Made by a program: the position numbers and the translations under genes
Shown: positions 1-14,900 of the stretch, piece after piece
How the letters are laid out: each line of letters begins with the position of its first letter
Position numbering within the stretch: position 1 is the first letter of the stretch
Notes under the pieces: generated by a model
What the model saw: only the letters and a program-made list of their open reading frames with translations
Database searches by the model: none
Told to the model about the DNA's origin: nothing
NCBI GenBank assembly: GCA_907165135.1
Contig: OU015567.1
Location: 6,758,001 to 6,822,000 of the forward strand
Length of the DNA stretch: 64,000 nucleotides
Origin: Oikopleura dioica
Lineage: Eukaryota; Animalia; Chordata
Direction of reading: 5' to 3'

Positions 1-744
1 CCCGCCGACCGAGCTCCCGCGCGCTTCTCGCTCTTTTTCACTCTCACTCTTCAGCTGGTTTAATTTTTCGATTATCGTGATTTTTGTACACGAACTAATC
101 TTTTATGCTCTTTCATCTCCATTTCTTAAAATTTTCATAGCTTATTGCAACGCTGAGTTAGGGCGAAAACATCGGCGCTCGATTTCAAGTGTACATAAGT
201 ACTCGAATTATTCGGATTGACACTTCGAGACTACCCTCATTGAAAAGCCCGTGCCTTCTTGCATAAGGCTTACTTATTGAGATTTTATTATAATTTATGC
301 AGCTCTCGTAATCGAGCGGTAAATAAAGGTTGTTCTGACCAGCGCAGCGGGAATCCCGCGCCAACAGTGTAAACTGCCCGTGTTTCACGCCGAGCGCTCC
401 AGGTAACCCGCATTAATCCCACGATAATCGGATAAGTAAACTCTTCCGGGAAATCTCAATAAGTAGGCCTTATGCAAGAAGGCACGGGCTTTTCAATGAG
501 GGCAGTCTCGAAGTGTCAATCCGAATAATTCGAGTACTTATGTACACTTGAAATCGAGCGCCGATGTTTTCGCCCTAACTCAGCGTAGCAATAAGCTATG
601 AAAATTTTAAGAAATGGAGATGAAAGAGCATAAAAAGATTAGTTCGTGTACAAAAAATCACGATAATCGAAAAAATTAAACCAGCTGAAGAGTGAGAGTG
701 AAAAAGAGCGAGAAGCGCGCGCGGAGCTCGGTCGGCGGGGTCCC
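1..744. mobile_element. Non-autonomous TIR element (MITE family A, Kolobok-like TTAA/GG ends); left end cut by the window edge
   Basis: ~290-bp inverted arms (1-~290 vs ~453-744) ending GGGGTCCC followed by TTAA at 745-748; near-identical copy at 21380-22132 in opposite orientation. Confidence 0.88.
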
Positions 745-748
745 TTAA

Positions 749-1146
749 GGGGGTAGAAACAGCTTTTTCCGAAAAGGGCGATTTTTCACCGGCGCTACAG
801 ACAAGAGAATCTTACATTTTCAAATTTTCTCTTCAGGTTTAGATAGATACATCTTAGATCTAAGAACATCTCTCTCGAAATTTGTTTTAGTCATCGAATT
901 TTTGAGTAAGCGGGCTCAGAAGCAGCTCATCTCTCCGAAATTCTCGATTTTCGCAAATTTTTAAACACGTATATCTCAAGTCCCCTGATAGTTAAACAAA
1001 TTTCATTCACATTTTTGTGAAGCTCAATCCTTTTTCTAGGAACATTTATGAGGAAATTTCGTGAACATAAATTAATCTTTAAGAAGACATAATATGTTTT
1101 CTTCTATATAGCTGCATTCCAAGATCGAGAAAGCTGTTTCTACCCC
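749..1146. mobile_element. MITE family B abutting family A and sharing its TTAA
   Basis: TTAA-GGGG(G)TAGAAACAGCTTT ... AAAGCTGTTTCTACCCC-TTAA (TTAA at 745-748 and 1147-1150); no ORF. Confidence 0.8.
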
Positions 1147-1559
1147 TTAACGTGAAAATCTTATTGCAGGAAAATCGTTTTTCCGGAAAATCCTCTTTTC
1201 CTTTCTTGAAGGGAAGAAAATAGATCCCACTGGTCATTTTGGAAATGAGAATCTATCGTTTTGTCAGAGAAATGAGCAAATATTTGGTGTTGAGCGCAAA
1301 TGTAGCTAAAAATTGAATTCTGAGAGTTGCCTATTTAGAAAATTAGAGAAAGTAAGAATGAGTGAGAATTGTTTACTTGGAGCGGAGGAGTTGTTCTCCA
1401 TGGCCGATTTCCAAGAGACGGGAGATACGGGGCAACTTCTAGCGCCCGACCTGACAAAAAGGGATAAGAATAAATAATCGTAATAACGATGAGTAGTTGT
1501 TGATTTTTATGGCGCTTAAAAAGGGAAAATATGGAGAGTAAAGCCTTATCCACGCATAG

Positions 1560-2228
1560 ATTTGTCTCAGTATTGGTACAGAGAAGATACGCAGGACGCA
1601 TTGATCAGAGAAATTCAACGGCTAGTAGAGTTGGGATTTGAAACTTCTAAAAATTGAAGAAATTTTTCTTTTAAAAATCTCGTGCAGAAAATGACGAGCG
1701 CGCTAGAATCGATTTTCTGCAGAATGGAGAAGATCGCCCCAGACTTGATGAAAAATGCAGCTTGCTAGAGTTCGATAGGCGTTTTCAAGTGTACGACAAC
1801 TTCTACTTCTACGATCTGAACTTTCCGCTCGCCGACGAAGTCAAAAAGTTAGAAAAGAAGAGCTTTGACGTGATTTTGACAGATCCACCTTTTTGGCTGG
1901 AAGAATACTTGAATAAGTTATTCGAGACGGTGGATTATTTGGCAAAGGATGAGGCGAAAGTGCTGGTTTGTGCGGGGCCGCCGATGATTTCTTTTATGGA
2001 AGAAACGAAGGGTTTTACAACTTGCCCGTATAGCTAGGGATAGAAACAATGAAATAGTTTGCTCATTAGTGGCCTTTTCTCCTATCCTCTTCCTACAGAC
2101 CGACGTACGAGAGGCGCCTTTCAAAATATCCATCAAATCAGAGCCGCTGCTACGTTAATTATCCTCTTGAATGTTCGAGTGTTTTAGCCTCTGATAATTG
2201 TAGGGACGAAATCCTTTTTGACGAGTAA
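1560..2228 (+). CDS. EEF1AKMT1: EEF1A lysine methyltransferase 1 (N6AMT2)-like, multi-exon, 5' end uncertain
   Basis: Exons encode DLSQYWYREDT, LLEFDRRFQVYDNFYFYD, FDVILTDPPF and RCYVNYPLEC, matching the family motifs LSQFWY, FEYDxRF, DPP and RCYxNY. Confidence 0.8.
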
Positions 2229-2260
2229 CGAAAATAGCGCTTGAAAATGTCGAATTTAGA

Positions 2261-2968
2261 ATGGAGAGGCTCTATCGGACAAATGGGAGAAAGTGCTTTA
2301 TTGGAATTTTCCCCAAAGATTTTTCAAGCGTTAGTGGAACTGGAGGACGACTAGAGAATTTGTTCAATAATAAGGATGATGTAAGATGTCTTTTTGAATG
2401 AAAAAGGAGACGTGTTTTTAAGGAAACCTTGCGTACTTCTTTCAAGTCTCAAGGATACTACACAAAACTCTCCCAGAAGAATCAGATCAAAACTCGCCGG
2501 GTTGTCGAATTCATCGAGCAAAACGCCGCGGAGTTCGAAACAGTTGGAGACGTTTCAAGAGTTGTCGTCTACATCTGTACTCATGGCTTCTCGTCCCAAT
2601 ACGGACAACATCTGTATTTCAGCGATGGGCATATTTTGATGGACCACCTGCTACGCCCTCTTTATGATTGCCCTGGTTTGGTGAATGTTCCACTTTTGGT
2701 CATTCTGCACTCCTGCCGCAAGTACAAGGAAGATTCAAGCATTGCTGAAGCAAGTTACAGATTTGCAGAAAATCGTCAAATCTGGCAAGATCGAGTTGCC
2801 CACTCAAAAGTCGATGTCGGTTTCGTCTTTTCAGCCGACGAGAATAAATATGCGCTTACTTCTTTCAATGGAACTTCTGATTTTGCAAGCAAGCTGGTTC
2901 ACGAATTCGAGAACAACGATGATATCTTCCGCGCTACGTCTTGTTTGGGGCTTCGGCACTCCTATCGG
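2261..2968 (+). CDS. Caspase-like domain 1 (5' half of a gene interrupted by the foldback element)
   Basis: ATG 2261, GT-AG intron 2381-2422; VYICTHGFS (catalytic His-Gly) and LVILHSCRK (catalytic Cys); p10-like VGFVFSADENKYALT...SDFASKL. Confidence 0.8.
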
Positions 2969-4061
2969 TAGGCTTACCGCGGTGTTTTCTATTTTTCAGG
3001 CTCTTTTGAAAAATCTCCCCATACTTTCAGAACATATGCATCAAGACAAGCCTTGAAAAACTGCACTTGCAGAATTTTCGATATGAGTCATCTTACCCCC
3101 TTTTTTGGGGGATTTTTAGCAAGAAAAAAAGCACTAGTTTGATTAGAAGCGGCTTTTGAGTGCGTGCTAGATCGATTTTGATAATTTGATGCCTACCATG
3201 TGAAAGATAAGCGCAAGATGCATCGATACATATGAAATTTATTATTGCGGAGTACTTCCTTCATATGATTCTAGAGCTCCAAAGTTGACGCAAGCAGCCA
3301 GATACGAAAATCCAATATTATCAACTTCTGATATAAGCATGCTATGATGATGTTTTATAGCTCAAATTGAAGCTTATAAATTACTGAACAAAATGGAGTG
3401 GTATTTTTGACCAGCCGGTTGTGCTTCCGGTTCGTCGCGGTTCATACCCGGAAATAGGTCAAAATGTAGAAATATGTATATCAAATGAATTAATTTTCAA
3501 CAGCGAATCTTTTGAACATATTCAGAAGTTCAACCGCCCGGTTATTATTGCGGTTCATGGTGGTTCATGGTGGTTCAAGCGCAGAAATGAACAAAATAGC
3601 AGCAATATGTATATCAAATTGAAACATAAATTAAGAACATTCATAAAATCATTTAATAAGCCCGAACCAACCGGTTGTTCTCCCGGTAAATGGCGGTTCC
3701 AAACGGTTCAAGCCGGTTCAAGCTAAAAACATGCTCAAAGTGGTTCAATATGGTTATCAAATGTATTCATTTACAATAGCAAAGCTTTCTAGCATATAAT
3801 GAAATTCAACCGCCCGGTTATTCTTGCGGTTCATGGTGGTTAATCGTGGTTCAAGCCCAGACATGAACAAAATAGCATCAATATGCATATCAAATTGAAT
3901 CTTGTATTAAGTACATTCGTCGAATCATTGAATAAGCCCAACCCAACCGGTAACTCTCGTGGAAAAAGAAGGTTTCTGACGGTTCAAGCCGGTTAAAGCC
4001 GAATATATGCTCAAAGTGGTTCAATATGTATATCGAATGAATGTTTATTAAAAAGCACGTA

Positions 4062-4288
4062 GTGTTTTGGGCCACCTTGGCGCTCGACTAAAAACAGCCA
4101 TATTTTTTGATTTTGTTTTTGTTTTCCTCAGTTAGCAATTTCACACTGCTCTCTCAACATAAAAGTATTCTTTTTCCTCTGTTCCTTTTCGTTCATATTT
4201 ACTTTATTATCCTGATGAAGTTTATCCAATAAACGAAAACGTTTGATACAAATCATATGATCTATTAACGAAGTCAACAAAAAAGATA
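4062..4288 (+). mobile_element. 227-bp insertion in the left foldback arm, probably a Penelope-like retroelement fragment
   Basis: Absent from the mirror arm; flanked by 13-bp direct repeat TAAAAAGCACGTA (4049-4061, 4289-4301); T-rich; contains a hammerhead motif. Confidence 0.6.
4208..4248 (+). ncRNA. Minimal type I hammerhead ribozyme motif
   Basis: TATC-CTGATGA-A-GTTTA-tccaa-TAAAC-GAAA-ACGT-TT-GATA: conserved core, 5-bp helix II, palindromic ACGT in place of helix III, 4-bp helix I. Confidence 0.55.
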
Positions 4289-4401
4289 TAAAAAGCACGT
4301 ATTTTGAAACTTTAACGAGATCCGGACGCGTGGTAAAACACTGAATATGTGCAAACCGCCCGGTTTTAATCGATTTTGTCTCTTTAAACGGGCAAACATA
4401 A

Positions 4402-6984
4402 GGGGAGGCAAGGCCCGTTTATACAATTCAGTCTGAGACGGGGCCAAGCCGACCCGAAGGAGAGGCCAGGCCCGTTTATACAATTCAGTCTGAGACGGGG
4501 CCAAGCCGACCCGAAGGGGAGGCCAGGCCCGTTCATACAATTCAGTCTGAACCGGGGCCAAGCCGACCCGAAGGGAGGCCAGGCCCGTTCGAACAATTCA
4601 GTCTGAGACGGGGCCAAGCCGACCCGAAGGGGAGGCGAGGCCCGTTCATACAATTCAGTCTGAGACGGGGCCAAGCCGACCCGAAGTGGAGGCCAGGCCC
4701 GTTCAAACAATTCAGTCTGAGACGGGGCCAAGCCGACCCGAAGGGGAGGCCAGGCCCGTTTATTCAATTCAGTCTGAGACGGGGCCAAGCCGACCCGAAG
4801 GGGAGGCCAGGTCTGTTTAAACGATTCAGTCTACGACGAGCCGAAGCCGACCCGAAGGGGAGACCAGGCCCGTTTATTCAATTCAGTCTGCGACGGGGCC
4901 AAGCCGACCCGAAGAGGAGGCAAGGCCCGTTTATTCAATTCAGTCTGCGACGGGGCCAAGCCGACCCGAAGGGGAGACCAGGCCCATTTATTCAATTCAG
5001 TCTGCGACGGGGCCAAGCCGACCCGAAGGGGAGGCCAGGTCCGTTTAAACGATTCAGTCTGCGACGAGCCGAAGCCGATTCGAAGGGGAGACCAGGCCCG
5101 TTCAAGCAATTCAGTCTGCGACGGGGCCAAGCCGACCCGAAGGGAGGCCAGGCCCGTTCATACAATTCAGTCTGAGACGGGGCCAAGCCGACCCGAAGGG
5201 AGGCCAGGCCCGTTCAAACAATTCAGTCTGAGACGGGGCCAAGCCGACCCGAAGGAGAGGCCAGGCCCGTTTATACAATTCAGTCTGAGACGGGGCCAAG
5301 CCGACCCGAAGGGGAGGCCAGGCCCGTTCATACAATTCAGTCTGAACCGGGGCCAAGCCGACCCGAAGGGAGGCCAGGCCCGTTCATACAATTCAGTCTG
5401 AACCGGGGCCAAGCCGACCCGAAGGGGAGGCCAGGCCCGTTCGAACAATTCAGTCTGAGACGGGGCCAAGCCGACCCGAAGGAGAGGCCAGGCCCGTTTA
5501 TACAATTCAGTCTGAGACGGGGCCAAGCCGACCCGAAGGGAGGCCAGGCCCGTTCATACAATTCAGTCTGAACCGGGGCCAAGCCGACCCGAAGGGAGGC
5601 CAGGCCCGTTCGAACAATTCAGTCTGAGACGGGGCCAAGCCGACCCGAAGGGAGACCAGGCCCGTTTATTCAATTCAGTCTGCGACGGAGCCAAGCCGAC
5701 CCGAAGAGGAGGCCAGGCCCGTTTATACAATTCAGTCTGAGACGGGGCCAAGCCGACCCCAAGGGGTGGCCAGGCCCATTCATACAATTCAGTCTGAGAT
5801 TGATGATACAATTCATCCGTCGCAGACTGAATCCTTTAAACGGACCTGGCCTCCCCTTCGGGTCGGCTTGAATAAGGGAGGCCAGGCCCGTTTATTCAAT
5901 TCAGTCTGAGACGGGGCCAAGCCGTCGCAGACTGAATTGAATAAACGGGCCTGGTCTCCCCTTCGGGTCGGCTTCGGCTCGTCGTAGACTGAATCGTTTA
6001 AACAGACCTGGCCTCCCCTTCGGGTCGGCTTGGCCCCGTCTCAGACTGAATTGAATAAACGGCCCTGGCCTCCCCTTCGGGTCGGCTTGGCCCCGTCTCA
6101 GACTGAATTGTATGAACGGGCCTTGCCTCCCCTTCGGGTCGGCTTGGCCCCGTCTCAGACTGAATTGTTTGAACGGGCCTGGTCTCCCTTCGGGTCGGCT
6201 TCGGCTCGTTGCAGACTGAATCGTTTAAACGGACCTGGCCTCCCCTTCGGGTCGGCTTGGCCCCTCTCAGACTGAATTGTTTGAACGGGCCTGGTCTCCC
6301 CTTCGGGTCGGCTTCGGCTCGTTGCAGACTGAATCGTTTAAACGGACCTGGCCTCCCCTTCGGGTCGGCTTGGCCCCGTCTCAGACTGAATTGAATAAAC
6401 GGGCCTGGCCTCCCTTCGGGTCGGCTTGGCCCCGTCTCAGACTGAATTGTTTGAACGGGCCTGGCCTCCACTTCGGGTCGGCTTGGCCCCGTCTCAGACT
6501 GAATTGTATGAACGGGCCTGGCCTCCCCTTCGGGTCGGCTTGGCCCCGTCTCAGACTGAATTGTATAAACGGGCCTGGCCTCCCCTTCGGGTCGGCTTGG
6601 CCCCGTCTCAGACTGAATTGTTTGAACGGGCCTGGTCTTCCCTTCGGGTCGGCTTCGGCTCGTTGCAGACTGAATCGTTTAAACGGACCTGGCCTCCCCT
6701 TCGGGTCGGCTTGGCCCCGTCTCAGACTGAATTGAATAAACGGGCCTGGCCTCCCCTTCGGGTCGGCTTGGCCCCGTCTCAGACTGAATTGTATGAACGG
6801 GCCTGGCCTCCCCTTCGGGTCGGCTTGGCCTCGTCTCAGACTGAATTGTATAAACGGGCCTGGCCTCCCCTTCGGGTCGGCTTGGCCCCGTCGCAGACTG
6901 AATTGAATAAATGGGCCTTGCCTCCCCTTCGGGTCGGCTTGGCCCCGTCTCAGACTGAATTGTATAAACGGGCCTTGCCTCCCC
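4402..6984. repeat. 57-bp GC-rich tandem satellite in two head-to-head arrays (~24 units forward, ~18-19 reverse)
   Basis: Unit GGGGAGGCCAGGCCCGTTTATACAATTCAGTCTGAGACGGGGCCAAGCCGACCCGAA; orientation switches at ~5800-5924; gives 19-aa periodic spurious ORFs. Confidence 0.95.
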
Positions 6985-8179
6985 TTATGTTTGCCCGTTT
7001 AAAGAGACAAAATCGATTAAAACCGGGCGGTTTGCACATATTCAGTGTTTTACCACGCGTCCGGATCTCGTTAAAGTTTCAAAATACGTGCTTTTTAATA
7101 AACATTCATTCGATATACATATTGAACCACTTTGAGCATATATTCGGCTTTAACCGGCTTGAACCGTCAGAAACCTTCTTTTTCCACGAGAGTTACCGGT
7201 TGGGTTGGGCTTATTCAATGATTCGACGAATGTACTTAATACAAGATTCAATTTGATATGCATATTGATGCTATTTTGTTCATGTCTGGGCTTGAACCAC
7301 GATTAACCACCATGAACCGCAAGAATAACCGGGCGGTTGAATTTCATTATATGCTAGAAAGCTTTGCTATTGTAAATGAATACATTTGATAACCATATTG
7401 AACCACTTTGAGCATGTTTTTAGCTTGAACCGGCTTGAACCGTTTGGAACCGCCATTTACCGGGAGAACAACCGGTTGGTTCGGGCTTATTAAATGATTT
7501 TATGAATGTTCTTAATTTATGTTTCAATTTGATATACATATTGCTGCTATTTTGTTCATTTCTGCGCTTGAACCACCATGAACCACCATGAACCGCAATA
7601 ATAACCGGGCGGTTGAACTTCTGAATATGTTCAAAAGATTCGCTGTTGAAAATTAATTCATTTGATATACATATTTCTACATTTTGACCTATTTCCGGGT
7701 ATGAACCGCGACGAACCGGAAGCACAACCGGCTGGTCAAAAAATACCACTCCATTTTGTTCAGTAATTTATAAGCTTCAATTTGAGCTATAAAACATCAT
7801 CATAGCATGCTTATATCAGAAGTTGATAATGTTGGATTTTCGTATCTGGCTGCTTGCGTCAACTTTGGAGCTCTAGAATCATATGAAGGAAGTACTCCGC
7901 AATAATAAATTTCATATGTATCGATGCATCTTGCGCTTATCTTTCACATGGTAGGCATCAAATTATCAAAATCGATCTAGCACGCACTCAAAAGCCGCTT
8001 CTAATCAAACTAGTGCTTTTTTTCTTGCTAAACATCCCCCAAAAAAGGGGGTAAGATGACTCATATCGAAAATTCTGCAAGTGCAGTTTTTCAAGGCTTG
8101 TCTTGATGCATATGTTCTGAAAGTATGGGGAGATTTTTCAAAAGAACCTTGAAAATCGAAAAACACCGCGGTAAGCCTA

Positions 8180-9183
8180 CCTATCGGGAAAGATTCAACG
8201 ACCCTGAAGAAGAGGGTGGCACGGATCAGTTCTATCCCCATTCAAAGAGGAAGAAAGCTGCAATTATAATCACATTGGGCGAGTTTGACAGAGAGAGAGA
8301 TTTCAAAAATGCTGATGTTGAAAGAGAAGGTAAAGCTTTTTTTGAAATTTCTTTGGGACCTATGATTTTTGTAGAAATGAAGAAGCTTGTAAAACAAATG
8401 GACTACGACGTCATTGCTTCCAACAAGACCTATATTACGCTTGAAAGTTGCCAGAAATTCATCCACAATTTGATCGAAAATAGCTTCCAGCACGGCCACG
8501 AATTCAATTCAATCATGCTCTATTTGAAAACACACGGGAGCTGGGGAAAGAAGGGCCAGATTGTCCATTTTTCGAACGATACGCAAATTCCGCTTCTTGA
8601 CTTGCTCCAGCCCTTCAACCAAGGACCTCTTAGAGGTAAAAAATAGAACTCCATCTAGTACTGCTAATCTTCTCTTTTCAGCAATTCCGAAAGCTATCTT
8701 CGTTGAAGCCTGCCAGGGAGAAACGAAAGAGACGGAGGGCATTAGATTAGGTCAGACGCACCTAGGAAGCAGCGAGCCTCGACATCATATGCTGAATACA
8801 ATTTTCTTCAAAGCAACAACAGAGAGAACTCTCTCTGTTACGCCAGAAGATCCTGAAGGACTCTCGCCTTTTACTGAAGGAACGGGGTCATTGAAATTTA
8901 CTTTTGGATATATAGAAATTTTTCATTTAAAAAACCTCGGCAAGCTCTGAAAGACATCGTCAACGAAGCACTTCTCAACGACGAAGACATCAACGCCTGG
9001 GACTTGTCGTGCAAACTCACGGAGAAAATGTCGTCAATAGAACCAGTCAGGCACCCGGCTCCAGAACGACTACATATTAATCCAGAATACGCTCTGAAAT
9101 TCGATAAATTCCTCCTGTGCCAAACGGATACGACGCTCACCAAAAACCTCAAAATCTTCAACAACACTCGATATCCTTATTAG
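8180..9183 (+). CDS. Caspase-like domain 2 (3' half of the interrupted gene)
   Basis: FYPHSKRKKAAIII, LYLKTHGSW (His), intron 8636-8681, IPKAIFVEACQG (Cys), SPFTE, GA-AG intron 8880-8944, ...TTLTKNLKIF...PY stop at 9181-9183. No ATG of its own after the insertion. Confidence 0.82.
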
Positions 9184-9340
9184 TGATTATTAGTTGATTT
9201 ACTGCTGCATAAAGTTCAATCTTCTTCAATCATTCTGTATTATTTTCTGTATACTTGAAAATTGCTAATTCCGATAAAAGTTCCAATAAATTTCATTCTC
9301 GATTCTTGATAACAACGATTTGAAAATAAGTCTAGTTAAG

Positions 9341-10454
9341 ATGGGAGACTACTACGACGTTCGCGGAATGAAGAGAATTCTAGCGATCTCGGTGGGCGAG
9401 TTCAACGCTCTTGACCCACTTCCGAACAGTCAAATTGATAAGGTAGGGGAAATGTGAGTGCTGAGGCTAAAACTGAATCCAGGAGCTCATCTTGAGGACG
9501 TTTTCCAGGCTCGGTTTTCGACCGACGCAGGAAAAAGAAAACACCTTGACAGCTTTGGACGCAACGAAGTTGATCGCCAAATTCTGTCAAAAGTTCGAGT
9601 CCGAAATGCCTATCAAGCCGATGAAATGCCTCGCTATCTACCTCAAGTCCCACGGCGGCATTGACAAGAAGGGAACAGTCGTGTACTTTAGGGATCAAAT
9701 GGTGCCGCTTTGGGATTTGTTGGACCCGATTCTGAAGCACCCGTGCTTAGAGGGAGTGCCCAAAATAGTCATCTTCGAAGCCTGCCGGTAATTAAGAGTG
9801 CGAATTCGTAACTCATGAAAAATAGAGGCCAGAATGCGCAATTCCGCAGAGCAGGGAACGATGGAGCGAAGAATGAAAACCCTAGAATGCCAGTTCACAG
9901 GAGAGTGGACACCATTCTTTTGCCGCCTCGCCAGAGGGAGAGTATGCCTACACCTGCGTCGATGAGAAAGCATCGCCATTTACGGAAACCTTCTGTGAAG
10001 CTCTTGATGAATGTCCAAGGTTAGAGGATTCAATATATTTTACATGGCAACAAGGCTCTTCTTTTTAGTCAAGACGTCTACGACCTCTCTCACACGATCG
10101 TAGAACGACTGAGACACAAACCAATTCTAATGACTGACGGAGACACTCCAATCCAGTACTTCATGGCGCCCTGCACTGAGACGAGTCTCACTAAACGACT
10201 ACGGTTGTACACTCCCAGGTTCAGTTCACGAGAAAAAGCAGTAATTTCAACTGATCGCTTTTAGTAAACAAAGCAATGGATACATGCCCGCTGCTGGTTT
10301 TCAAAGAGCCGCTTCAACTTCCAGTATGGACGATCAATTGTCTTCATTGATGGAACAAATCAAATATCTGCAAGGAGAACGCGAGAAACTGATCACTGAG
10401 AATCAGAATCTCCAACTTGATCTCAACAATCTACGGCGAAATACTTCAGCGTGA
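9341..10454 (+). CDS. Prodomain-less caspase-like protease 3 with C-terminal leucine zipper; one -1 frameshift in a T run at ~9917-9921
   Basis: MGDYYDVRGMKRILAIS, IYLKSHGG, VPKIVIFEACR|G, AASPEGEYAY, SPFTETF, TSLTKRLRL; intron 10219-10264 leads in frame to a heptad-Leu exon. Confidence 0.82.
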
Positions 10455-10780
10455 AGCCTTCAACTCTTACAATCGCTCTGTAAAGAATTTTTTGATAAAA
10501 AATATTGTGCCTTCTGTTCAACAGATTAAGTTAAAACTCTTTTACTGACCTTTCTACTTCAACTCACAATCATCGAGCAGATGCAGTAGATTCTCTGCAA
10601 CCTTATTATCTCTCTATCTCTTCGGATGCAATCCCATTCATTTACTGTCTTGATGGATGTCTGTATTATAGCCGATTTTATTCCGAAAGTTCCCATACTT
10701 CTTTATATTTCGACTTCCCACTTCGAAATTTGAGTTTGAATTGAATTAATTCAGCCCTATTAACCACTTTGCTTCCAGAA

Positions 10781-11731
10781 ATGGATGAGGAGAAGTACTG
10801 GTATGATACCGACACGTCTCAAGATGAAAGCATAAAGAGGCTGTTAGCAATCTCAATTGGCGATTTTCAGAACGAATGGCTACAAAGCCTGCCATCAGCA
10901 GTTATAGATAGGGTTCGTTTTTCGTTCACAGTGGAGTAATCATAGAATGGTTTTAGGAGCGAGTCGTTCGGACATTTTCAAAGCTCAATTTTCGCCCTAC
11001 GCAAGAACGCTTGTCAATGCTGACGAAGGCCGACGGGCGGAAGTTGATTCTCAAGTTCCGTGAGAAATTCAAAGACGGAATCGAGACTAAATGCTTGGTG
11101 ATTTATCTAAAATCTCATGGTGGACTTCATCCTCACAAAGGCACGATGATATATTTTTCGGATGAGGCAATGCCCCTTTGGGATTTGCTTGAGCCGCTCT
11201 TGCAATTGCCACAATTGCAGGGAGTGCCCAAAATGGTCATTTACGAGGCTTGCAGGTAAAACCAAATCCAACTTCCGGGCTCAAAAGTAAAATATTCAGA
11301 GGCGAAAATGCTCAATATATTACTGCAGGAGTCGCCACACCAACAACTCCAGTTGCATATGTCCATCGTCGAATCGATACTATTTTATTCGCGGCTTCAC
11401 CTGAAGCTGAAATGGCTGTCGCTGGTTATGAGAATGAGGTGTGTTCTCCTTTTACTGATGCTCTCTGCAAAACACTGTTGGAAAATAAAAGGAACGGGAT
11501 CGTCATCGTCTTTTCTCGACTAGTACTGTAAGTATGATATTCTGATCCCAATCAAGCCAGGATGTGTTTGATTTGGGCATAAAAGTCACCAATGACCTCC
11601 GAAAAGCGAATTTACCAGTGAGGGAGGCAGATGGCACGATCCACGCATGGGCACTGGCTCCTGTGATGGAGTCGTGTTTGACGAAACACCTCCGACTGAT
11701 GCATCCAAATGAGGAAGCAAAGTATGGCTGA
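10781..11731 (+). CDS. Prodomain-less caspase-like protease 4 (close paralogue of 3)
   Basis: IKRLLAISIGDF, IYLKSHGG, VPKMVIYEACR|G, ILFAASPE, SPFTDAL, ESCLTKHLRL; intron positions match protease 3. Confidence 0.85.
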
Positions 11732-12002
11732 GTTTCAGCTCCTTCGCTCTGAATTCCATCGCTCAAAAATTCAAATTGGCCATTCGAGCCCTCTTCCTGA
11801 TGCTCTCTTTTTCTACATGCAAACTTCATTCATTGAAAACTTCGTTCAAACTATTTCAATCATTCTTATCTTCTCCTCATTGTGTACAAAGAAATAATCT
11901 AAGTCTGTGATTTCTTTCCTCAAGCATCGACCCAAGCTCAAAACAGTTCCAAACTAAATTATTCCTATCCACGTTTATTTCCAATAAGAATCAAAAGAAG
12001 CC

Positions 12003-12899
12003 ATGTTATCGGACGCACAGCCTTCAACCGAATTTATCCGGGACGTGATTAAACGAGCAGTTGTCAAAATGGCTCTCAAGCTCGAATACGACCACATCGA
12101 GCCCGACGCTCTCGAAACTCTCGCTGAAATGTTCCTAACGACTCTTGGGAATATTGGCTTCCAAACGAAGGAATTCACTGAATTGGGGTCGCGAACCGCC
12201 GCCACGATTAATGATGTTCTCTCTGCCACGGTTGAACTTGAAATTGACCTGCCAGAAAGCGTAAAGAATATTTTGGAAAAGAACCAAGATTATCCGCTTC
12301 ACAAGAAAGATCGAATCGTAAGGAGTGAATTCTGAAATCACTTTTGAAAATCAATATTCAGGAACAAGCTCATATTCCCGACTCGCCAGCTGTCAAAGCG
12401 ATCGCTCCAAGAAAAGAACACGCGCCCCATATCAACGATTTTATGCCCATCTTCCCTGAACCGCATACCTACGTCACCACTGGTTAGTTTCATCTTTTTT
12501 CTCCTATCAATGGCTTTTTCAGCCGCTTTTTGTAAAAACGCCCATCATGAAGAATTTGAATCGACAAAATTACAAGCGCTTGAAAAAATCCGCGACGCGC
12601 AAAACTCTCTTTCCAAATTTGTTTCAAAAACTGCTCGAGGAAGAGGAAGAACTGCCATAATCAAGTATGAGAGCTGCTTTCTCTTGACATTAACATTGTT
12701 AAGCCTGATACCAGCAGATGATTCGACCGGTATAACGACGCCATTGTCGACGGATATCTCAGAATACAAAGCGATAAACGTCAGCGAACAGCACGAATGG
12801 GTTACGACTCCGAAAATTCCAAGTGTAAGCGAAAATGCGACTCTGGAACAAATCAGTCAAAATCCTTTCGTAAAGCCGCCGAAAAGAGCGAGAATGTAA
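12003..12899 (+). CDS. TAF8: TFIID subunit 8 (BTP histone fold plus TAF8_C)
   Basis: ALETLAEMF...TELGSRT...DV histone fold; FMPIFPEPHTY motif; C-terminal NPFVKPPKR basic motif; two short introns. Confidence 0.88.
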
Positions 12900-13024
12900 A
12901 TTTTCCTTCATTTCAAATAATAAACTTTGATATTCAAAAATTTACAAAAAAAAAACTTCAAGCGCATATTTTTATATTTTGTGTTTGCTCTTGCTTATCA
13001 GTTGTGTTTGTCTTATCAGTTCTA

Positions 13025-14900
13025 CTAGAAGCAGGCAGTGAAAAAGGCTAGAGGCTCATCATCAGGCCAGATTTGTTTGTTTTAACTTTGAGAAGCTTGA
13101 CATCCAGCTCAGCTCTTAGATCTCGGTAATTTATCTTTTTTTTTGGATCATCACGTTTCATGAAATTACTACTTTCTTAAAAAGATGATCCGTTCCAGCG
13201 TTGTAAACTTGACGAACTGGCCGGATCCATGTCCCATATGAGATGGAACCTGGCGAAGAGCTGTTGGGCAAGGATCTTCCTCGATTGTTGTATTCGCCTC
13301 TAGGCCCGCTATTCCTGACAATCCAGGCATCTATTGACGGGATAGAATGAACCTTTTTAATGCAAAATACAATACGGACACTTGCTGACAAGACGCTATG
13401 AATACTTAAACTTAATGAACCCTTTTCTATTGCTAAACCGTCCCCAAGTCGCTTCAAAGTCTTTCTCGGCCAATTTCTGTCCATCGCCGAGTACAGTCAG
13501 CGTCCACTGGACGTCTATCTGACTATGGCCAGAGTCAATTGACAGATGCAAGTAAATCCCGAGCCAGCGACACCTGAACGATTTTTTTTATATTGGCGAA
13601 ATAAATCTTAATCCTAATCAACCTGTCTGCCGCGCTGTATTCGTTGCAGTATTCCAGCCACATTGGCACGCTGGCCATAGAGAACGTGTTCGAAGCCACT
13701 GAAACAGTTACAGTAAGAAACTGCCCTTAATCGTGCATCTTAAAATTGGCCAAAAGGTTTGTGGAAAAACCTATCAATTTAATATTTCATTCGACCCCTT
13801 TTTCGGAAGAAATTCTAAGCTAAGATCAATTGAGAGACTCTAATTAGACACGAGCTCGATCGAAAATAAAGGTTCATTTGGTTTTTATTGTCGAATAGAG
13901 AATAATAAGAAGCGCTGGAGAATAATCAAAATAGAAGCTCACCAGAATATTTGACGGCGACCAGATTGACATCGAGATCAAAGGAGATTTTCTTTTCGCA
14001 TAAGCGCTTTCGGATCATTCTTTTTCAAGGTTTCTTATTGTTTAATACTCGACTGATAATCAGGTCTAAGAGAACGCTCCTGTATCGCCGAACGAGCTCT
14101 GCTTCAATACATCCTTGAGGAATCGGCGCTGAATCTTCTGGGAAGCGAAATTTGTCGAGCAAAATCAAAGAGAGAACGGTGTCTTCATCCTCGAGCTTTG
14201 GAAAATCGTCAAGTAAGCAACAAAGAGCATCGTTCAAGTCGCTCGTTGTAGCTTTGCTAATCCCTTCTTTGTAAACCTCCAACAGGCGCGTTTCCAACAA
14301 GTGCTCGGTCACCATCATTAATTGCAAAACCTCGACCGGTTGATGGGACATTTTGCTTTTCAACGCGTCAATTATGCTTTCTTGTAGCTTCTCGTTGTCG
14401 ATAAAATGCGTGAAGTCAAAGAGCTTGATTAGCTCCAACGTCGAGGGATTCCGAGACAGGCCATAAATAAAATCGCCGAATAACTTGAGAATATTTATAT
14501 CGAAATATTTGAATTCGACGATTTTTCTGTTTTCGAATTCTCGCTGTAAATAATTTTTCTCTGGGCTTTGGATAAATAAAAGTATGATCGGCCCAAGCCA
14601 GACGACTTCCGAAGACTTTTAGGTGATCCCAAAATGATTTTTAACCCGGCAAAGATAATTTTTGAGACATTCTCTTTGTTGATTTCAATCCATAAGAACT
14701 AATTTGGCCTTCTTTATATCTCTCTTTTTCATCTTCGACAATATCTAGCAACATGTTTCTATCGAGCATTTTTGCTTCGGGAAGACAATTTGTAAGGGGA
14801 AATTTTGAATGTTGATTTTTCAGGGTTGGAGAGGATATACATTTCTGCTAAGCTCAGGGCAAGAACGTGCGTTGGAGCGCTGCCAGCCCCGTGCCCATCT
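13025..14900 (-). CDS. BTB/POZ - BACK-like - MATH-like protein, multi-exon, boundaries approximate
   Basis: VEFKYFDINILKLFGDFIYG (BTB C-terminal helices), helical region in ORF 14025-14438, and SNTFSMASVPMWLEY/WLGIYLHL/VQWTLTVL/TWG..FI (MATH-like strands). Confidence 0.55.

Follow-up and report, generated by a model that had tools for sequence, protein, structure and literature searches.

Cleavage after aspartate at P1 is the defining property of the caspases and rests on three invariant residues. In the larvacean Oikopleura dioica, a 64,000-nucleotide stretch of contig OU015567.1 (positions 6,758,001 to 6,822,000 of assembly GCA_907165135.1; hereafter the window, whose numbering is used throughout) contains a cluster of four Peptidase_C14 domains on the forward strand at 2261-11731, in which all three of these residues are replaced and the catalytic His/Cys dyad is intact. 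The equivalent residues of better-described members of the fold are known: Arg87, Gln184 and Arg233 of caspase-7, which correspond to Arg64, Gln161 and Arg207 of caspase-3, and Asp365, Asp462 and Glu500 of MALT1 lie in similar structural positions (PMC4357240). In TbMCA2 the putative S1 site is formed by Asp95 of helix 1 and Asp211 of loop L4 (PMC4357240). The larvacean lineage has been reported to be without any Bcl-2 family genes (PMC8998228), and our literature search recovered no open paper describing larvacean caspase pockets. Comparison with the above systems suggests that the cluster proteins are, on balance, probably caspase-derived cysteine proteases, whose S1 pocket would have been rebuilt from a basic to a non-basic or acidic state and which would cut after Arg or Lys.

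Catalytic dyad and S1 pocket of the cluster proteins

The four domains belong to three genes: domains 1 and 2 are fused in gene A, while genes B and C encode copy 3 and copy 4, respectively. Thus, the four-domain cluster described in the initial annotation of this locus holds as to the domains, but not as four separate genes. Searches of single exons with the Pfam Peptidase_C14 profile (PF00656), a check proposed in that annotation, recovered domain 1 (E-value 6e-10), copy 3 (3.4e-7) and copy 4 (1.2e-6), with no match to domain 2 when searched exon by exon. Against a hidden Markov model (HMM) constructed from 18 canonical caspase domains alone, the spliced versions of domain 1, domain 2, copy 3 and copy 4 scored 69, 60, 83 and 69 bits, respectively, and 200 shuffles of each domain reached at most 5.9 bits. 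The HMM alignment shows His-Gly and Cys in their columns for each of the four domains, as for every orthologue seen, in agreement with the motifs THG/HSCRK, THG/EACQG, SHG/EACRG and SHG/EACRG, which upholds the intact dyad claimed earlier for every copy. Common to all copies are an insertion of 5-6 residues behind the catalytic His-Gly and a Glu where caspases carry the Pro of the xPG motif; there is also an insertion of 2-3 residues in loop L5 relative to effector caspases. As previously stated, there is no CARD or DED prodomain: the gene models begin 10-21 residues before strand 1, and Pfam detects only C14 in full-length relatives. Domain 1 is short of about 45-55 residues at the C-terminal end of the fold, and the intersubunit linker of copy 4, as modelled, contains no Asp. 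Judged from sequence, the proteins are very probably catalytically active.

The S1 columns were read from the HMM alignment with the canonical R/Q/R caspase P0017 as a ruler, and their assignment is based on HMM alignments and published structural equivalences. In the columns of caspase-3 Arg64, Gln161 and Arg207, domain 1 has L (or N), H and T, domain 2 has F, E and T, copy 3 has L, E and T, and copy 4 has L, E and A (or Y). The alternative residue in domain 1 depends on the placement of a 2-residue gap and that in copy 4 on where a 2-residue insertion is set; with neither setting of this insertion does an Arg fall in the Arg207 column of copy 4. The alignment is free of gaps between strand 5 and the Arg207 column, and in copy 3 loop L5 keeps its Gly and its aromatic residue; hence the manual alignment behind the initial annotation holds, and the replacement of all three Asp-binding residues in every copy is confirmed. 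No conserved Arg or Lys is found in loops L1 and L5 of any copy. Domains 1 and 2 have basic residues near L1 that shift position or disappear in L003, a related contig described below, and copy 4 has no Arg or Lys at all in either pocket loop. An Arg that precedes the manually assigned Leu of domain 1 by 3 residues was considered as a substitute S1 arginine and rejected, because its position is not kept in the L003 orthologue.

The position two residues before the catalytic Cys (Cys-2) is occupied by Glu in three of the four domains (domain 2, copy 3 and copy 4) and by His in domain 1. Similarly, the start of helix 1 carries an acidic residue throughout, namely Glu in domain 2 and Asp in the other copies. 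Among 41 aligned caspase-domain rows, all 13 that are without Arg64 are also without Gln161 and Arg207, and nine of these 13 have Asp or Glu at Cys-2. These features suggest a mechanism in which the basic Arg/Gln/Arg pocket for P1-Asp would have given way to a pocket devoid of basic residues, with an extra Glu at Cys-2 in three domains. Loss of both arginines would expose the conserved acid of helix 1, at the position of MALT1 Asp365 and TbMCA2 Asp95, and this acid together with the Glu on loop L4, at the position of MALT1 Asp462 and TbMCA2 Asp211, could create a net acidic pocket that would direct cleavage to Arg or Lys instead of Asp. Domain 1, with His at Cys-2 and a shortened C-terminus, might differ from the others or, as a partner of domain 2, have a regulatory part. 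Forced dimerisation, rather than recruitment through CARD or DED domains, is the probable route of activation, by means of the tandem domains in gene A and a C-terminal coiled coil in copy 3.

Descent, conservation and predicted P1 preference

Profile searches against the PDB recovered ancestral effector caspase, Sf-caspase-1, DrICE and caspase-6, -3 and -2, along with a few weak unrelated chains. An AlphaFold model (predicted local distance difference test, pLDDT, 88.6; predicted TM-score, pTM, 0.87) was available for P0069, a full-length transcript-derived member of the clade of copies 3 and 4 with an L/E/T pocket. All 50 of its top 50 Foldseek matches were true caspases (caspase-7, -3, -9, -8, -6 and Sf-caspase-1), with a TM-score of about 0.85 by target against caspase-7 and -3. 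Neither MALT1 nor a metacaspase appeared among the matches listed in the PDB sequence searches or the Foldseek top 50, nor among those listed when P0009, a protein of the 'L/D' type, was the PDB query. The GVPK-x4-EACRG and SPF blocks of the cluster proteins correspond to the GKPK-x4-QACRG and GSWF blocks of caspases. In a tree of 41 rows, from which para- and metacaspase outgroups are absent, a supported clade (99/89) unites copies 3 and 4 with P0069; it lies within a group of weak support that also holds P0025 and P0018 (R/Q/R) as well as P0011 and P0016 (R/Q/C). Domains 1 and 2 have very long branches and are of unsure placement; domain 1 diverges most of all rows (end branch 3.19), and both show at most 22-25% identity to any other row. 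Copies 3 and 4 share 51% identity. The family is best read, from these sequence and model comparisons, as derived from canonical caspases, with the C14A lineage and fold; the matches are to true caspases, the few weak chains aside, and the caspase-lineage membership proposed earlier is sustained. By a functional definition based on Asp specificity the proteins would not be filed as caspases, and 'caspase-derived' would be the appropriate term.

Homologue searches returned only unnamed metagenome or transcriptome open reading frames (ORFs); relatives were found in marine metagenomes including Tara, and one (P0007) comes from a metatranscriptome. The 14.5-kb metagenome contig L003 encodes proteins with 50-68% identity to those of the cluster, in the gene order of the window: a methyltransferase, the two-domain gene, copy 3 with its coiled coil, copy 4 and a Bromo_TP gene. 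Its pockets have H and A in domain 1, F, E and T in domain 2, and L, E and T in both copy 3 and copy 4. Gene order is partly kept in L004 also. The pocket is L/E/T in P0069 and P0077, and the same or similarly non-basic in L001, L004 and P0078, showing that the predicted pocket states are conserved in orthologues from several diverged lineages. Given that L003 retains both gene order and pocket residues at such protein identities, the cluster is old. A recent expansion is not supported: the lineage-specific tandem expansion of the initial annotation is contradicted by L003 and by the deep divergence of the paralogues, including copies 3 and 4. Beyond the clade of these genes the predicted pocket conversion recurs, as indicated by P0009, P0026, P0040, P0015, P0012 and P0037, which combine Leu, Met or Thr in the Arg64 column with a D-x-C-R/H active site. 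Two or three tandem caspase domains are present in the metagenome proteins P0009, P0010, P0014, P0020, P0023, P0026, P0028, P0030 and P0039.

The cluster proteins are under strong purifying selection. P0001/L001 is a relative with 84% protein identity, and the ratio of non-synonymous to synonymous divergence (dN/dS) against L001 lies in the range 0.08-0.11 (domain 1, 0.10; domain 2, 0.08). The corresponding polymorphism ratio (pN/pS) against L002, a contig with 94% identical DNA, is 0.04-0.18, with 16 synonymous and 3 non-synonymous differences in copy 3. Heterozygosity is high in the DNA sequencing runs, and the coding allele differences listed for domain 2, copy 3 and exon 2 of copy 4 (two runs, two haplotypes) all fall in third codon positions (15 of 15, including 5 of 5 in the domain 2 part of gene A and 8 of 8 in gene B). 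Neutral evolution with dN/dS near 1, which the initial annotation had named as speaking against active proteases, is at odds with these values. Such selection suggests that the proteins probably cut after a residue other than Asp.

With regard to expression, P0007 is of metatranscriptome origin and a transcript contig of a copy 4 orthologue (L005/P0078) is without introns 1 and 2, exactly as modelled, showing that orthologues in relatives are transcribed and correctly spliced. About 430 nt at the beginning of this contig (1-430) are unrelated upstream sequence in place of the start of exon 1, which might reflect chimeric assembly, a polycistronic RNA left unprocessed or the use of another 5' end. 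Two oligo-dT RNA-seq runs with the same species label gave 6-8 partial reads of less than 95% likeness. These runs have no reads even on the neighbouring Bromo_TP gene and are therefore uninformative on the expression of the cluster; they probably derive from a diverged lineage.

As to the residue cut, the evidence leans towards a basic rather than a hydrophobic P1, the two options named initially, given the Cys-2 Glu in three of four domains, the retained helix-1 acid and the lack of a conserved basic residue in the loops. Arg or Lys would be favoured, since the Cys-2 Glu and the helix-1 Asp match the acidic pair of MALT1 and the metacaspases. Several points weigh against this reading. The position in loop L5 is Thr or Ala and not acidic like Glu500 of MALT1, the helix-1 Asp is present in all aligned canonical caspases and is not discriminating by itself, and at Cys-2 domain 1 has the non-acidic His. 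Only one independent pair on supported branches bears on the joint change of the three S1 positions, which leaves a co-variation test without power. Furthermore, a transposon interrupts gene A in this assembly, and RNA reads of the same species label failed to map at >=88%, even to the neighbouring housekeeping-type gene. Legumain, which cuts after Asn, also has Glu at Cys-2. For its S1 site, a zwitterionic character and a make-up of other residues have been described (PMC4357240). This Asn-specific zwitterionic site (PMC4357240) is pertinent to an alternative which we consider unlikely, though likelier than the other rivals, namely that the proteins are active but prefer a neutral, small, hydrophobic or Asn residue at P1, the pocket being merely de-charged. 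Here the Cys-2 Glu would be buried or paired with the basic residue following the helix-1 acid in three domains (Lys or Arg after Asp in copy 3, copy 4 and P0069, and Arg after Glu in domain 2), which would be in keeping with Thr/Ala in L5 and Leu/Phe in L1. However, an acid at Cys-2 in nine of the 13 rows without Arg64 would be expected if charge matters, and L1 and L5 are without a conserved basic residue.

It is rather improbable that the proteins are pseudo-proteases or scaffolds, which, like decoys of the cFLIP type, would keep the fold for binding or regulation and the dyad without catalysis. Domain 1, C-terminally short and with the longest end branch in the tree, might be so interpreted, and relatives include tandem pairs of active and inactive domains (e.g. 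P0020, whose domain 1 has S/S for H/C). Against this, the His-Gly and Cys are invariant in the four domains and all orthologues seen despite saturated synonymous divergence, whereas decoys have usually lost the dyad. Lower still is the probability that specificity for Asp or Glu was kept, with other residues substituting for the lost arginines: Arg or Lys close to L1 of both gene A domains, or a conserved Arg-Arg pair ahead of strand 5 (copy 3, copy 4 and P0069), could be proposed for this role, but L003 does not keep the L1 residues in place, both pocket loops of copy 4 are free of Arg and Lys, and a P1 carboxylate would be repelled by the Cys-2 Glu. Finally, the Leu in L1 resembles Leu359 of MALT1. 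A Leu in L1 combined with an acid at Cys-2 is the para-/metacaspase state (for the acids, PMC4357240), and deep support in the tree is weak, so that descent from an old C14 lineage of para- or metacaspase type, in which the arginines were never present, might be entertained. We regard such descent as very improbable in light of the matches to true caspases, with neither MALT1 nor a metacaspase among those listed, the correspondence of the two sequence blocks to those of caspases, and the canonical R/Q/R of the nearest relatives, P0025 and P0018.

Gene structures, transposon insertion and neighbourhood

The region is eukaryotic, and splice models were built with GT..AG introns of 29-49 nt (Table 1). 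A methyltransferase-like gene (PF10237) lies upstream of the cluster and a Bromo_TP gene (PF07524; TAF8-like) downstream, such that the interval 1500-12400 holds five genes on the same strand, 158-327 nt apart (methyltransferase-like, gene A, copy 3, copy 4 and Bromo_TP). An AG is located 0-2 nt 5' of the start codon of each protease gene. This layout resembles an operon and hints at trans-splicing of a spliced leader. No Rfam family was detected at gathering thresholds within 1-14000 of the window.

Table 1. Features of the protease gene cluster in window coordinates
Feature	Position	Strand	Description
Gene A exon 1	2261-2380	+	Holds the start codon and, of domain 1, strand 1 and loop L1; splice model
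Gene A Leu34	2360-2362	+	Caspase-3 Arg64 column, domain 1
Gene A Asp39	2375-2377	+	Helix-1 Asp, domain 1
Gene A intron 1	2381-2422	+	42 nt, GT..AG
Gene A exon 2, left part (domain 1)	2423-2968	+	Pfam C14, E 6e-10
Domain 1 dyad	His94 2582-2584; Cys138 2714-2716	+	
Domain 1 His136	2708-2710	+	Cys-2
Domain 1 Thr186	2858-2860	+	Arg207 column
Foldback transposon	2969-8179		5.2 kb, inside gene A coding exon
Gene A right part	8188-9183	+	Linker and domain 2; exons 8188-8329, 8375-8635, 8682-8886, 8916-9183
Gene A right-part introns		+	45, 46 and 29 nt, GT..AG
Domain 2 dyad	His323 8533-8535; Cys367 8711-8713	+	
Domain 2 pocket residues	Phe261 8302-8304; Glu267 8320-8322; Glu365 8705-8707; Thr410 8840-8842	+	Glu365 at Cys-2
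Gene B (copy 3)	9341-10454	+	Exons 9341-9442, 9483-9787, 9826-10019, 10069-10218, 10265-10454 (last, coiled coil)
Copy 3 dyad	His91 9651-9653; Cys135 9783-9785	+	
Copy 3 pocket residues	Leu27 9419-9421; Asp33 9437-9439; Glu133 9777-9779; Thr 9952-9954	+	Thr in Arg207 column
Gene C (copy 4)	10781-11731	+	Intact, 277 residues; exons 10781-10912, 10957-11255, 11300-11527, 11557-11731
Copy 4 dyad	His98 11116-11118; Cys143 11251-11253	+	
Copy 4 pocket residues	Leu37 10889-10891; Asp43 10907-10909; Glu141 11245-11247; Ala185 11421-11423	+	

The transposon in gene A is a foldback element, with arms that are 99-100% complementary and form a near-perfect inverted repeat, as well as internal tandem repeats. 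Its termini are TAGGCTTACC...GGTAAGCCTA, and the 8-bp target duplication CCTATCGG is present on either side at 2961-2968 and 8180-8187. By the 8-bp duplication and the TAGG... termini alone it is hAT-like; the ORF lists show no transposase ORF in it. In the DNA runs the end of the element is multi-copy, with a depth of 2151 versus about 100 and different flanks starting at 8179-8184. When the element and one copy of the duplication are removed, domains 1 and 2 join in one frame of 513 residues, and three relatives that are free of it (P0001/L001, L003 and P0004/L004) read straight through. The first three bases of the element, TAG, are a stop in the frame of domain 1, and an ATG at 8125, within its other end, is in frame with domain 2; thus, the insertion may have split the two-domain gene into two, a possible gene fission.

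In this assembly copy 3 has a 1-nt frameshift at a run of four T residues (9918-9921). L002, an Illumina marine-metagenome contig, has five T residues and an uninterrupted copy 3 frame, and differs from the window in the frameshift interval by exactly two homopolymer insertions, an A at 9817 (A5 vs A6) and the T in this run. The short-read contigs X1 and X3 from the DNA runs, of the same organism, match the window in all else and likewise carry two additional letters in 9702-10394, of which only the added A is displayed. The frameshift is likeliest an assembly error, the window assembly probably carrying homopolymer errors; the differences at 9817 and 9918-9921 render other frameshifts in this genome equally suspect. 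That copy 3 might be a pseudogene was also considered, and ruled against by the pattern of polymorphism and the intact frame of L002. Relative to L002, the 46-nt segment 10219-10264, with 7 differences and 1 gap, diverges in the manner of an intron, for which L002 has a better donor, GTAAGT, and the heptad-rich coiled-coil exon that follows shows 3 differences in 187 nt. This exon is kept in L003, and P0011 and P0025, too, have a coiled coil at the C-terminus. In copy 4, the 65 nt at 11492-11556 are absent from the orthologues in L003 and the spliced L005, both of which read ...DKSQDVFDL. They can be modelled as a GA..AG intron (with exon 11300-11491), or as 36 coding nt followed by a 29-nt GT..AG intron, and the other haplotype has indels of 1 and 2 nt here; the segment may be a recently gained intron.

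Comparison with known caspase-fold proteases

None of the four domains has the QACxG pentapeptide (HSCRK, EACQG, EACRG and EACRG instead), so surveys keyed to this motif would miss such genes, as had been anticipated, and apoptosis inventories derived from them would overlook or miscount these genes. Within the library searched, 'EACRG' was found in neurofilament papers only and in no caspase paper. With all three specificity residues replaced and both the dyad and purifying selection kept, the cluster presents a natural experiment on the evolution of P1 specificity within one fold, and copy 4, being an intact, short gene for about 265-277 residues without a prodomain, makes the idea directly testable. 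To return to the reading of the proteins as caspase-derived enzymes cutting after Arg or Lys, we would extend it, tentatively and with somewhat less than even confidence, to the proposal that a conserved animal clade within the true caspases convergently rebuilt an acidic, Arg/Lys S1 pocket like that of para- and metacaspases, with tandem domains or a C-terminal coiled coil, in place of CARD or DED, serving for activation. If true, this would be a naturally occurring caspase that does not act as an aspartase.

The effector caspases (caspase-3, -6 and -7, Sf-caspase-1 and DrICE; C14A) provide the best sequence matches and all the top-50 fold matches, and share with the cluster proteins the His-Gly/Cys dyad, the GxPK-x4-xACRG block, the short N-terminus and the p20-linker-p10 order. 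The cluster proteins differ from them in having L(F)/E(H)/T(A) in place of the Arg/Gln/Arg triad, in the insertions after His-Gly and in L5, in the lack of an Asp in the copy 4 linker, and in that one gene is two-domain and another has a C-terminal coiled coil. Drosophila DRONC (PFCRG) and C. elegans CSP-1 (SACRG) also have Gln161 replaced within a caspase-type block, and the sequence matches to related rows include DRONC and CED-3. Both DRONC and CSP-1 presumably keep the two S1 arginines, whereas here all three positions have changed together. The SCRK of domain 1 resembles the MCRK of MALT1. Like MALT1 (C14B), the cluster proteins have no basic residue in S1, an acid at Cys-2 (Glu for Asp462) and the helix-1 Asp (Asp365) (PMC4357240). 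Unlike MALT1, they are without death and Ig domains, Pfam finding only C14. A closer relationship to metacaspases is not detectable in the sequence and fold matches listed. In the terms of the acidic triad of MALT1, two of the three positions are acidic in domain 2, copy 3 and copy 4, with Thr or Ala in place of Glu500 at the third, and it is this same pair of positions, in helix 1 and at Cys-2 on loop L4, that is acidic in TbMCA2.

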